DNA of 64,000 bases from Piromyces finnis finn (GCA_002104945.1 MCFH01000007.1:806001-870000), one strand, 5' to 3'; positions 34,178 through 46,979 are shown, counted from the stretch's first letter. Notes: generated by a model from the sequence alone, not told the origin. A program made the numbers and translations.

Positions 34178-37100
34178 CTAACAATCACGTGATATATATA
34201 TATCAAATTTATTTTCTGATGCCATTACTATGGATCTGTAGGATTTAAAGAATGCACTGTACCCATCTTTTTGATTATATTTATAGTATAATTTCTTTAA
34301 TTTAACAACATATAAATAGTAGATGACAATGGAGGAATATATTAAGGTTCCTATGGAATCAAAATAATAAACTAATTTATTGTTATCGACAATCTTCATA
34401 ATATATAATAATAATATATATATGATATAAGCATAAATTGGAACGGATAATGGCTAAAAAAAAAAATTTAGAAAATATTTAAAAAAAAATTTTATGAGTA
34501 AATAAATAAATAAATAAATAAATAAATAAATAAATAAATAAATAAATAAATAAATAAATAAATAATAATTTATGTTTACTTCTTTGAATTTTTGATTCAA
34601 GTTTCTAATTCCATAGGCATAATATGCACCAGCTATAATGATAAATATATTTAATAGTAAACTAAAATGAAAAGATGAAAAATTAATACTATTATTATAA
34701 ATTTAAATGGAATTTATATATATCTATTTTATAAATAATCATTATAAATACCTTAATATTTTAATGTCCGAATTTTGACATGTGTTATATTCTTTTTCAT
34801 CAGCATCTATAGCTATTATACTGGTGAATTTCGATGTTAAAATTTGAATTAAAGTCATTAAAGAATGGAATAAAAGTAACCCCAGAACAAATGAATATTT
34901 TATAATATTATTTACTCTTATATCCATTTTTTTATCAATTGAAAATCTGTAAATAATAAAGTATATTTAATACAAAAAGTAAATTAATAATAATTATACA
35001 AATATTTTATAAAGCATTTTATAAATAAAATAAATAAATAAAAAAAAAAAATTTACATATAATAAATTCTGTATGTTTTAGTAATGATTGATCCAAATAC
35101 GAAAGAAAATCCCTATATAGTATTAAAACATTAAAGATAATTCATCATTTTTTTTTGTTATTAAAATCATTTGACTTGGGAAAAATAATAAATATTATTA
35201 TATACATACACAATTATTTAAAACAAAAGATAAGAAACAATCTAAATTGCTATATTTTTCTTTTACTAGAACCAACACGTAAACATAATTTAATAACAAT
35301 CCAATGAGTATTAAAATTAGGAAATCGAAACTTGCTGTTCATGCCATTTTTTTTTAAAAATAATTTTAAATAAATCATATTAAATATCGTTATTTTCATC
35401 ATATTATATATATATTATATAAATTATTTTTATAGAGTGAATATTTAAATACTAAACTTACCAGCTTTTACAATTTCTTCATTTTTAAAGAAAAATGCAA
35501 ACATTGTGACTATTATTGTTATTGAAATAAGTAAATAAGCAATTAATGATATGATGATATCAATTATTATTGGTCTCTTTTGTTTATATCTTTCTGAACA
35601 TGTTAATCCAGTAAATTTTGTATTGGCACAATTACATAAGTTATCATTAATACATTTCCCTAAATTACAAGTATTACATTGAGGTATATAACTATAGGGT
35701 AAACATTTAAAAATAGTAATAGAAGAAGAATAAAAAAAAAAAAAAAAAAATAGATAGAGAATTTTTGAGTTTAGCGTTTTTATTTATATCATAGCTTGAA
35801 ATATATTAAGGGAATATAAATTTTTATTCTTTTAGTTAAAAGATGACAATATTATTTACCATGATTTAATATTTATTCCATTTCTGTAACTATTAATATA
35901 GCCTTCTTTGTCACATTCTTTAATTTTAATATTCATGGCTATATTATTGTTTTCGAATTTCTCAAATTGACCTTTTTAAGTTTTTTTTTTTTTTAAAGAA
36001 AAAAGGTATTAATCATCATACTAATTTTATATTTTATTATTTTATGTTATTACCGAAAGTAACAAGTTTAAGTTCTAACGAATAGTCACCAGGATTTCCA
36101 ACAACTAATAAACGATTATTTAAATTAGAATAATAAAACCATTTTATTTTAATAAAATGAAGTATTTTACGCCATTTACTTTACCTTGTAAATTCTTAAA
36201 ACTACAAGTATTATTCATACAATAATTACTATGAGATCCTAAAATCTTTGCATTACTATCTCCATAAATTGATAATTCATAGAATATTAAGTTTTCTATT
36301 TTCAAGTTGTTGTAACTGTCAATTTGGAATTCTAAATTTAATTATTTTTTATAGTATCAATAGCAATAGGGTAAAAATAAAAGATAGTTTAATATTTCAT
36401 AGTTCTAAACTTTTATATATTTTATATATGATAGTTACTATTTCCAAAATCATCATAAAGAGAAACTATTGTGACAATACATAAAGGATGATTAATAAAT
36501 ATATAAAAGTAGAGTAGTATTTTTTTTAATATAAAAAATGTGGTGATAATAATAATAATAATGAAAAAAAAACTCAAAATCTTACCTAAATATTCAGAAT
36601 TAATATTATCTCCAGAATATATTTCTATTGTATTCTTTTGATTATAATTATCAAATTTTAGGTGTGTTGGATTTGTTACTACATTATTTATCATCGCTTG
36701 CTCATACATTGAAATAGAGCCGTCAAGATTAGGTTTATGTATATTATCGAAAGCATAAACAATGTTTCCTATATAATAAAATTATATAGTTTATTTGAAA
36801 ATGAATTGATAAATTGAATTTATTGAAATATAATAATAATAATATTAATATTATTAAAATTTAATTCTCCTTTTTTTTTTTTTTTTTTTTTTATATTAAT
36901 ATTAATATCTAATAATGTTAATCTTAAAAAAAAAAAAAAAATACCAAGTAATGCAGTGTTATTTTTAAATGAACAGCCATTAAAAGATATACTATTTATT
37001 TTAGAACTTCCTTTTGCATTAGAATAAAAAACGCCACCATAGTTCGATGCTCTATTATTAGTAAATTCTATTCCAGAAAGATCTAATCCTGGTACTATAT

Positions 37101-44100: not shown

Positions 44101-46979
44101 ATTTGAGAAATACATTAATCCATATTTAAAATATGAATTCGTTATCATAGAATTACTGATTTCTGTCATTCCTGGTTTAACTTTAAATCCAATTACTATA
44201 TATGTTATCATAATAAAAATTAATTATTAATAGGAATAAATTCAGTACTTTTTTTTATTTTTTTTAATAACCATACATCCATAAATTTTATTAAGTAAGC
44301 AATAATTGAATTTTATTAACATGGAAAAAGTAGTTAAATCAACTACTCCATTAAATTCTATAAGTGCCGCTTCAGAATTATCATCTATTTCTTCTTTTAA
44401 TAAACTACATTCATTGTTTTCGTGACAATAATGAATATTATCTATCTAATGTTATATTTCAAGTAAATACAAATACATATTCATATAATAAATATACTAT
44501 TACAATTAATATTTTTTTTTATCAAGTTATTTTAAAATTATTATTTAAAATTTTACCTCTGTGTGATATAATTCTACGTAGCAACTATTAATGAGGAATA
44601 GTACTAATTAATTGTATTAAATTTAAATAATGTTATTCAATGAATAAGTATATGCATTTATAAACTTTTGTATTAATAAATTAATTATATATTATTTGAT
44701 TGTATTTATTATCGTAATACCTCCATCTTGAAAAACATTTTTTAATGATAAACTGAATCCAAAAAATGATGCTATATATATTAGTAATATAATATTTATG
44801 ATTAATTATTATCCATAATAATATAGTTATGCTTATTGTTTAGTTTTTATATTATATGTTGAATATAAAACTTATTCCTTTACTTTCTGTAAAAAAATCA
44901 TTATTATTAATATTAAAGACAGGGTGAGAGTGTAATGAATAGAAATTTAAAATATCTACAAAATTCATCAAAATGACAGCCTCATTTTCCTGATATACTA
45001 ATCTATATCATAATAGTAAATTAAAAATATGAGAAAAAAAAAAATGAAATAGACTTTATTTATTAATAAATAATCATTATCATTGCAAATGAATTGTTAC
45101 CCAATGTGAGTTCCTTCAATATTAGTAAATGTAGAACTTATATATTTATATAATTCAATTAATGATATAATATTATATATTATTCATATATCTATAGATA
45201 AATAGATAGATAGAATGAATATATATTAAAAATAATCTTATGAATTTAACATACTTATTAAATTTGATTTTTGATCCATTTGAATGTACTAGAGTTGAGT
45301 CGTAACCATAATTTTCATGGTAAATATTATTAACGTTTAAAAAGTCAAATGAAATATTTGCTCCATTTATTAATTTATTTGTTGTTCTTATAAGAGATCC
45401 TTCATCTTTAATATAAATATTTTCCATAGTTATATTCCTAATAATAATAATTTGCATTAATATTTTTTTTTTTTAATTTTTTAATTTATAAAATATAAAA
45501 AATATAACTTTGTTTTCCCCTTTATATTTAATATATACTTTAAAACAGCTTTTACATCACCATCAAAACTCATGACAGTTCCTGTTGATATATCCGTTCC
45601 ATAATAATTTTCAATCGATAGTATATTATTTCCATATGTACTACAAAATAATTTAAAATATTATTTTGAATATATTTATATATATATATAAAAATAAATA
45701 TATATAAATATATAAATACAAATATATAAACATATATATAACTATAAAATAATATTTTTAAATGTTTACCTAAAAAAAGTTCCTTCAATCGAATTCCTTA
45801 TCAATCTATTTTGATCTCCAATTTGCGTTATATTATATACATATGTTGTTGTATTATAGAAATTATCTGATGTAATAGTAAATGTATGCCCCTATTTATT
45901 TTAATATTTTATATTTTATATTAATAAAATAGATTAAATGAGAAATTATTCTTTTTATGTATATAATGTACATATCATATTATAATAACTATTAATAAGT
46001 AAATATTACAGATTCTAAACTTGTAACATTCTTAAACATAACAATATCAATTATTGTAGTATATGTATATTTCAGTGAAATCGATCCTCCATAATTTTCT
46101 GAAAAAACATTTTCAAATTCAGTATTATTAAATGTATTATTTGAATAGGATAACGTCAGAGCTCCTGCACTAATTGATAATTTAAATAAGTAAAAAGAAA
46201 CATTTGTTTTTATTATTTATTTTGGTGAAGGACTGAATTTATTTATCTTTCAATGATAATATATTTTTTATCATTTATATTTATTATGAAAAATACCCAT
46301 TTAATAATTTTCCATTAAACATATTTTCAAATCTAGAATTCAAACATGCTATATTTGAATAGGAACTTATAATTCCACTATTATGATAATTACCAGAAAA
46401 TAGAGTGTTTTTAATATTAAAAGTATTGAAATATTTATTATTACCCAATACTTCAATTAAATATAGATTATAAATATTGTTTCCATAAAATTTTGAGTTT
46501 TCAATATTTATATTATAATTGTTAAAATAGTATCCTGATTTCTCTTCAGGTAAACTAAAGTTTGAATTTAATATATAAAATGTCGATTTTAAATCCAATA
46601 TATTATTGTATGATGTCAATTTTCCTATGAAGTTTACATTTTTAAATGTAATATTCTTATTATTTAAAAAACGAAAATTTCCTATAATAGTAATGTTTTG
46701 TATTTCTATACTTTCGCATTCTTCATGAAATGAAAAATCAATATCTTTTATGTGTAATTCAGTAGTTACGTTATTTCCAATCAATATAAAATTTTGAGAT
46801 GTTATATTGATATTTTTTGTTTTATTAATACCAATATTATCTTGAATGTATAAAGATTCTTCCTTATTATTAATGTTTTTAATGAATTCATCTTCATTAT
46901 TGATTATTTTTCCATAAATACTAGTTAAATAATTATTAAAATAAATAAATATATAGAATAAAATGTGAAGATATAACAT
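41130..46979 (-). CDS. Class C (7tm_3)-like GPCR with beta-helix and EGF-like ectodomain; paralogue B, ~20+ exons
   Basis: Signal peptide MLYLHILFYIFIYFNNYLTSIYG. Exon 1 aligns with exon 1 of paralogue A and ends the same way (FENMFNGKLLNG vs FEKLFNTKILNG). Repeats FSENYGGSI, FKNNTSYRG, FIDNTATNYGGLIY and FENNKALLG. EGF GCEPICMNNGNCVTDNLCDCSNTKFTGKDC. KAGSYDFLNLILIG, IQC, ECL2 KEFEVC, AIIIGTCFAYGIRKINKKFKE and TM7 YYFNSIGLIISSHFILYFLYIRK. Confidence 0.8.
41703..41767. repeat. (AAT)n microsatellite in an intron of receptor B
   Basis: Direct reading; source of the poly-Tyr tail of ORF 41702-41998. Confidence 0.9.
43742..43785. repeat. Compound (AC)n(AT)n microsatellite in an intron of receptor B
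   Basis: acacacacac...atatatat; source of MCVCVCVCV in ORF 43516-43767. Confidence 0.9.

Follow-up and report, generated by a model that had tools for sequence, protein, structure and literature searches.

Two adjacent class C receptor genes with beta-helix ectodomains in Piromyces finnis, probably old tandem paralogs of a gut-fungal family

We analysed a stretch of 64,000 nucleotides of the gut fungus Piromyces finnis (GCA_002104945.1 MCFH01000007.1:806001-870000; the whole of it is called the window below), in which two neighbouring genes, A and B, encode G protein-coupled receptors (GPCRs) of class C. We consider it probable that A and B are intact and transcribed tandem paralogs of old origin, in which the Venus flytrap domain has been replaced by a beta-helix followed by a linker resembling epidermal growth factor (EGF) modules, and that they form two separate lineages whose adjacency reflects the growth of their family and not a dedicated two-subunit receptor. 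They belong to a branch of class C GPCRs which is specific to the Neocallimastigomycota. Both genes are already catalogued, and this type of receptor has been known since 2016: in three gut fungi, P. finnis among them, Seppälä et al. (PMC5168858) found class C GPCRs numbering about 100; a pectin lyase fold or beta-helix repeats occur in around 30% of these, and an EGF-like domain in a few. Table S2 of that report lists the protein sequences, among them Pf_GPCR_014 (A) and Pf_GPCR_009 (B); organism, proteins and architecture are thus the same as ours. An earlier sequence-only reading of the window had pointed to this report, whose content is as it had stated; both genes stand in the table. It is a transcriptome study; the order and exon structure of the genes, their synteny and their orthology are not reported in it, and its main text does not use the word "heterodimer". 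Our additions to the 2016 catalogue are modest: the 22-exon gene models, a corrected N-terminus of B, a census of the family, and the conservation of the arrangement B then A in a metagenomic relative, and apparently in Piromyces sp. E2, as opposed to a single gene at the syntenic locus of Neocallimastix.

The gene pair occupies positions 34178-46979 on the minus strand; the two genes are collinear and head-to-tail, B lying upstream of A. The elements of the pair are the following:

34178..40380, minus strand: gene A, class C GPCR with a beta-helix and EGF-like ectodomain; 22 exons, 1162 amino acids
41130..46979, minus strand: gene B, paralog of A; 22 exons, 1205 amino acids
35860..40380, minus strand: A exons 1-16, N-terminus resembling a signal peptide, a stretch modelled as a long right-handed parallel beta-helix, followed by a beta domain of smaller size
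35462..35691, minus strand: A exon 17, EGF-like cysteine module and first transmembrane helix (TM1); it shows the cysteine pattern, has small strands in the model and has 34 homologous exons in the P. finnis genome
34178..35334, minus strand: A exons 18-22, TM2-TM7 and a short tail ending in ISRDC
41130..41486, minus strand: last exon of B, TM6-TM7 and a longer Ser/Thr-rich tail ending in SYAEQN
40381..41129, no strand: spacer of 749 bp from the stop of B to the start of A; the genes are head-to-tail and share no divergent promoter

The splice models were built from GT-AG sites, reading frames and the comparison of A with B, and were then corrected against the database proteins P0001 (A, NCBI BCR36DRAFT_409820, Pf_GPCR_014) and P0037 (B, NCBI BCR36DRAFT_345958, Pf_GPCR_009). 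The 22-exon model of A reproduces P0001 exactly, and the C-terminal 986 amino acids of the B model are identical to P0037. In both genes the coding reading is uninterrupted: 22 exons each, without a stop (the raw sequence of the TM3 exon of B reads GGC TTC TCA, with no stop in frame). All introns are GT-AG, the 21 intron phases out of 21 are common to A and B, 14 of the 22 exons have equal lengths in the two genes, and both contain micro-exons of 27, 36 and 47 nucleotides. Each stop-free piece of A pairs with one counterpart in B at 30-58% identity, and this exon-piece comparison found no third copy in the window. Over their whole length A and B are 43.4% identical (44.5% in the ectodomain, 44.7% in the EGF-like module plus the seven-transmembrane (7TM) region), in a window whose G+C content is about 17%. 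We noted microsatellites in the introns of both genes: an (ATT)n tract of about 145 bp at 39226-39370, in intron 2 of A, a (TAT)n tract at 41700-41770 in an intron of B, and a short (TG)n tract at about 43745-43770.

These results agree with most of what the sequence-only reading had said about the layout of the pair. It had described two genes on the same strand, 750 bp apart, with common introns at three named places, and we find the 749 bp spacer on the minus strand and all three introns: after ...LNG (phase 2), after ...GTFL in one gene and ...GTFF in the other (phase 2), and within ...KA|A and ...KA|G (phase 1). The two different C-terminal tails that it had quoted, ISRDC for A and SYAEQN for B, are those of our models. 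It had called the sequences "strongly diverged"; they do differ, but an identity of 43%, equal in the ectodomain and in the 7TM region, makes this expression a relative one.

The 7TM region of each gene is assigned to class C by its profile. Against the Pfam family 7tm_3 (PF00003), whose gathering cut-off is 33.5 bits, A scores 86.7 bits (profile positions 8-249 of 251) and B 79.5 bits (positions 4-251 of 251); taken one by one, the single exons of both genes give 7tm_3 pieces below the cut-off, but in the correct order along the profile. When the 7TM region of A was compared with the sequences of the PDB, mGluR1 came closest (E = 1.9e-11), followed by mGlu5, mGlu7, mGlu2 and mGlu4, GPR158, GABAB2, GPR156 and GPR179. 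The cysteines of TM3 and of extracellular loop 2 (ECL2) in A align with the pair of mGluR1, and both are kept in B, where as in A they would form a disulfide. The TM3 motif K-T/S-Y-R is kept in A and B, and a stretch of intracellular loop 3 (ICL3), KFKEPLSVPIY, is identical in the two. Structure prediction was consistent with the profile: the AlphaFold2 model of residues 842-1162 of A has a mean predicted local distance difference test score (pLDDT) of 76.8 and forms a bundle of seven helices (DSSP gives eight helical segments, two of which we read as one TM helix). All of the top 50 PDB matches of this model found by Foldseek are class C receptors (GABA-B, GPR156, mGlu1, mGlu2, mGlu4 and mGlu5, the calcium-sensing receptor CaSR, and GPR158), with TMq values of 0.56-0.68 and best E-values near 1e-7. 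The profile check and the modelling proposed with the sequence-only reading thus came out in favour of class C, the model being that of A, and so did its claim of a conserved TM3-ECL2 cysteine pair in both proteins.

No Pfam match to ANF_receptor or to NCD3G was found in P0001 or P0037. By analogy, the absence of a Venus flytrap does not bar a protein from class C. GPR158 and GPR179 lack a flytrap (PMC8611064), and this analogy is founded on them. GPR156, also a class C receptor, is not known to have one. GPR158 has an EGF-like cysteine-rich linker before its 7TM region, no flytrap, and a TM3-ECL2 disulfide (PMC8611064), as the sequence-only reading had correctly stated for the EGF-like module before TM1. 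GPR158 and GPR179 (for instance PDB 7ewl and 7she) therefore resemble A and B in the class C 7TM region, in the lack of a flytrap, in the EGF-like linker placed just before TM1 and in the TM3-ECL2 cysteines; between A and GPR158 the sequence comparison gives E = 8e-5 and the structural one a TM score of 0.61-0.63. They differ in that the ectodomain of GPR158 is an alpha/beta domain (PAS-like) and not a beta-helix, and in that GPR158 is a homodimer which recruits RGS7-Gβ5.

In place of the flytrap, A and B have a long ectodomain. Both proteins begin with a hydrophobic N-terminus, which on hydropathy alone agrees with the signal peptides announced by the sequence-only reading. The AlphaFold2 model of residues 24-885 of A is made almost entirely of beta structure (mean pLDDT 80.1, predicted template modelling score 0.75); it was built on an alignment of 21 rows, and an alignment of fragments with 65 rows was dropped, as it misplaced the repeats. 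According to this model the ectodomain of A is a right-handed parallel beta-helix. Compared with VIA, it matches the PL6 alginate lyase 7o7t with Z = 23.2 and a root-mean-square deviation of 3.3 Å over 341 residues, then the Vag8 passenger (Z = 22.0), a xylogalacturonan hydrolase (21.4), the PfbA adhesin (21.3) and phage tailspikes (about 20-21); the matches to parallel beta-helix proteins as a whole span Z values of 17-23. The ectodomain thus has in common with PL6 alginate lyases, GH28 pectinases, phage tailspikes, autotransporter passengers and Chlamydia Pmp repeats a fold, and differs from the solved beta-helix proteins in having no sequence similarity to them (a PDB sequence search with the A ectodomain gave no match) and in being fused to a 7TM receptor. 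Per-exon Pfam searches found single Chlam_PMP repeats in A (21.9 bits, 36823-37269) and in B (25.6 bits), above the cut-off of 20.6; Chlam_PMP is not listed in the scans of the whole proteins, which used E thresholds of 0.01 for A and 0.1 for B. The EGF-like module shows the expected cysteine pattern, and in B it reaches 21.1 bits against Pfam EGF_2, slightly under the cut-off of 22.1. Between the two, residues of about 713-823 of A (around 690-800 in the model) form a separate small beta domain after the beta-helix, which Foldseek pairs weakly with Ig-like or MSP-like sandwiches.

The architecture claimed by the sequence-only reading, beta-helix, Cys-rich or EGF module and 7TM region in each protein, is thus recovered through the Chlam_PMP repeats, the cysteine pattern and 7tm_3, the fold of the beta-helix being modelled for A. 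Its further claim, that the flytrap is replaced by a polysaccharide-binding beta-helix, holds for the replacement, on the strength of Pfam and of the model. The binding of polysaccharides is suggested by the resemblance of the fold, and is plausible when the fold is taken together with the ecology of the fungus.

Both genes are transcribed and spliced, at a low level, since Table S2 of Seppälä et al. (PMC5168858) holds spliced transcripts of both. The transcript of A (Pf_GPCR_014, Locus7221v2rpkm0.21) is spliced as our model from exon 10 onward, except that it does not contain the micro-exon of 47 nucleotides (37783-37829, minus strand), whose absence shifts the frame upstream of FYRIHEC; either the micro-exon is truly skipped in an isoform, or its absence is an artefact of the assembly. 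The transcript of B (Pf_GPCR_009, Locus6796v1rpkm2.19) crosses the junction of exons 1 and 2 and extends upstream of the start codon chosen by NCBI. The tags of these transcripts, in reads per kilobase per million (rpkm), are 0.21 for A and 2.19 for B, about tenfold apart within the same transcriptome assembly. Four sequencing runs which we guessed to be RNA were compared with words sampled from 38000-44000 and contain 24-43% of them, which comes near the share of exons in this interval. The start of B deserves to be considered apart: the NCBI model, of 986 amino acids, takes as its start a Met inside exon 1, close to the end of this exon, and lacks 219 amino acids, the hydrophobic N-terminus among them. 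In exon 1 of B (46297-46979, minus strand) the reading frame is open from an ATG at 46979, and the identity with exon 1 of A is 44%. The NCBI start is likely an annotation error, and the exact model gives the corrected N-terminus.

We then placed the pair within its family, using exon sequences or P0001 and P0037 as queries. In the P. finnis genome itself (56.5 Mb in 232 contigs), 7tm_3 has 85 matches, many standing in arrays, exon 1 of A has 15, and the exon carrying the EGF-like module and TM1 (the EGF+TM1 exon) has 34, from which we count at least 34 paralogs. More than half of the EGF+TM1 exons (19 of the 34) sit in nine same-strand arrays with spacings of at most 11 kb. A tree of ten concatenated exons, covering 16 paralog loci and hence about half of the 34 paralogs, makes the tandem neighbours at C193, C57, C90 and C156 mutual sisters, with supports of 95-100. 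The identity in the EGF+TM1 exon is 53-60% in three old tandem pairs, 100% at C156 and 50% between A and B. Hence, the family appears to grow normally by local tandem duplication, because same-strand arrays are common in it and the neighbours tested are sister duplicates; and because the tandem pairs elsewhere in the family are such sisters, the sequences point to no family-wide division into two subunit types. At C156:814883-834372 (plus strand, loci L010/L011) three receptor copies lie on the same strand about 7 kb apart; two of these hardly differ, with an identity of 100% in the EGF+TM1 exon, which indicates a very recent tandem duplication. On the contig of the window, 15-20 kb to the left of its start, further split matches to 7tm_3 were seen (C200:786333-791621, plus strand), and there are therefore probably more intron-rich class C genes nearby.

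In other fungi, the arrangement of the pair is found again. On the metagenome contigs L019/L020 lies a gene with exons that share 50-94% identity with those of B and only 36-76% with those of A; every 3' exon of this B ortholog is open, and about 830 bp downstream of its end there is an exon 1 which is 61% identical to that of A and 45% identical to that of B, and which groups with A in the exon-1 tree. A contig of Piromyces sp. E2 holds B-like EGF+TM1 and TM2 exons, then a gap of 2028 N, then a complete ortholog of A. As judged from these sequences, the order from B to A, the strand and the spacing of about 0.8 kb are kept in the metagenomic gut fungus; in Piromyces sp. E2, within the limits set by the assembly gap, order and strand are apparently kept too. 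In our trees A joins the A-like copy of E2 and B the B-like copy of the metagenome, each with a support of 100/100; A and B thus appear as two orthologous lineages, and the duplication therefore predates the splits from the metagenomic fungus and from Piromyces sp. E2. The tails follow the same division: the A-type tail is common to A and its E2 ortholog, the motifs of the B tail are kept in the metagenomic ortholog of B, and the two types differ.

Neocallimastix shows a different picture. Its gene P0034 shares 44.6% identity with A and 44.3% with B, and the locus can be aligned with ours through a neighbour:

47866..49537, minus strand: gene upstream of B with repeated DY..W motifs, used as the synteny anchor

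A tblastx comparison found this gene to be 72-76% identical to a gene of 468 amino acids upstream of P0034, in the same orientation, and we consider the P0034 locus syntenic because this same neighbour precedes it in the same orientation. No second homolog or remnant was found within 10 kb on either side of P0034, and the search for synteny downstream of the pair gave low-complexity matches only. Searches with the words of P0001 returned 3-4 full-length relatives; as low-complexity words were crowding the candidates, the count in other genera is a lower bound. The check for conservation of the pair, which the sequence-only reading had proposed, is therefore positive for the metagenomic fungus, apparently positive for Piromyces sp. 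E2, and negative for the syntenic locus of Neocallimastix, with its single gene.

Other explanations of these data have to be weighed. That B is a decaying copy, or a protein truncated at its N-terminus and devoid of signal peptide as the NCBI model of 986 amino acids implies, could be argued from the internal Met at which BCR36DRAFT_345958 starts, from the long branch of B in the exon-1 tree and from the absence of any ortholog of it among representatives at 50% identity. We hold this to be extremely improbable: no stop interrupts exon 1 after the ATG at 46979, the N-terminus that it encodes is hydrophobic, and it is 44% identical to its counterpart in A; the transcript Pf_GPCR_009 reads through it upstream of the NCBI start, none of the 22 exons contains a stop and all splice sites are GT-AG, and the metagenomic ortholog keeps all its 3' exons open at 50-94% identity. 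One copy being a pseudogene was among the outcomes foreseen in the sequence-only reading, and what we found is two intact copies, both with published spliced transcripts. The nature of the ectodomain leaves more room for discussion. It could be an adhesin-like contact module, similar to those of the Pmp proteins and autotransporters, which reports attachment to particles, microbes or proteins, and not a sensor of polysaccharides. The Chlamydia Pmp repeat is indeed the only Pfam signal in the ectodomain, and adhesins and autotransporter passengers score like lyases in the structural comparison (Vag8 with Z = 22.0, PfbA with Z = 21.3, and pertactin). It has also been speculated (PMC8665504) that class C GPCRs and homologs of substrate-binding proteins which are induced in co-culture may bind sugar polymers or contact methanogens. 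Against this, the structural comparison places polysaccharide lyases, GH28 enzymes, epimerases and tailspike depolymerases highest, and the fungus lives on plant cell walls. We regard the contact module as unlikely. The common fold settles nothing in either direction: as protein-binding adhesins use it too, it does not fix the ligand. To our knowledge, no ligand is known for any member of this gut-fungal receptor family.

The other explanation concerns the pair as a whole. The sequence-only reading had put forward an A/B heterodimer, which would be functional and possibly obligate in the manner of GABA-B1/B2 or T1R, its two beta-helices jointly reading a plant-wall polymer and its two tails sharing out trafficking and coupling. 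Solved class C receptors are dimers, and when the gene of a homodimer is duplicated, its two products initially tend to dimerise with each other. This idea would also be consistent with the order, strand and spacer of about 0.8 kb kept in L019/L020 and apparently in Piromyces sp. E2, with the conserved C-tail proper to each lineage and with the presence of both transcripts in one assembly. However, GB1 and GB2 share out the tasks of binding the ligand and coupling to the G protein and are joined via C-terminal coiled coils, and such an asymmetry is not seen in a coarse sequence comparison of A and B, which resemble GABA-B in their class C 7TM region (GABAB2 with E = 8e-4, and among the top structural matches) and in being two paralogs: both have a full ectodomain, the identity is equal in ectodomain and 7TM region, and the ICL3 motif is identical. 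The other tandem pairs of the family are sister duplicates with no general subunit types, the syntenic locus of Neocallimastix has one gene and no remnant within 10 kb, the head-to-tail orientation does not imply a shared promoter, and the abundance tags of the transcripts are about tenfold apart. Moreover, the partners in class C heterodimers are not known to require adjacent genes. A prediction of the complex between the EGF+7TM parts of A and B returned a score of 0.00, which is defined as no answer and counts neither way. With tandem arrays as the rule of the family, a single gene at the syntenic locus of Neocallimastix and no asymmetry seen, we found nothing that supports the heterodimer, and we judge it to be quite improbable. 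In its fuller form, a heteromer of paralogs derived from a homodimeric ancestor, adjacent across the Piromyces-related fungi, with two beta-helices reading one plant-wall polymer and tails which split trafficking and coupling, we take it to be very unlikely. Were it true, A and B would make up a class C heterodimer independent of GABA-B and T1R, with a sensor which is not a flytrap.

Some observations nevertheless weigh against our own interpretation of A and B as paralogs placed side by side through family growth. The same order, strand and spacing of about 0.8 kb in a second taxon are also what is expected of a pair functioning together. The trees give no settled branching order for the lineages of A, B, C178, C156 and Neocallimastix, so that the duplication may be older or younger than the split of Piromyces and Neocallimastix, and Neocallimastix may have lost one copy or may always have had a single gene there. 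Finally, A and B are slightly less identical to each other (42-43%) than either is to the Neocallimastix gene, which from the sequences fits either an older duplication followed by a loss in Neocallimastix or an acceleration after the duplication. Synonymous sites are saturated at 55-65% protein identity in this genome of 17% G+C.

If we are right that A and B are old tandem paralogs, their history would be as follows. A single ancestral gene, downstream of the gene with DY..W repeats, would have duplicated locally in tandem, and the copies would since have been kept as separate orthologous lineages, A together with that of Piromyces sp. E2 and B together with the metagenomic ortholog. An extracellular ligand would bind along the beta-helix; the signal would then reach the class C 7TM region via the EGF-like stalk and via ECL2, which the TM3-ECL2 disulfide would hold, and this region would couple to a G protein, each receptor probably acting as a dimer like the solved class C receptors. 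With ectodomains that are 44.5% identical, A and B have most likely diverged in ligand specificity, and they have probably diverged in intracellular handling too, because each lineage has its own conserved C-tail. They are members of a large receptor family restricted to gut fungi, which may link the sensing of plant walls to the induction of enzymes or to the behaviour of zoospores. In addition, the loci with one gene and those with two offer a clean natural comparison for the heteromerisation of duplicated class C receptors.

Outside of the pair, we must note that the DY..W motifs of the gene at 47866-49537 resemble, as we presume, those of SAXO/STOP axonemal proteins, which would suit the flagellum of a zoospore. 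Lastly, at 20290-21452 on the plus strand of the window, two open reading frames of 116 and 131 amino acids look like exons of one conserved gene.

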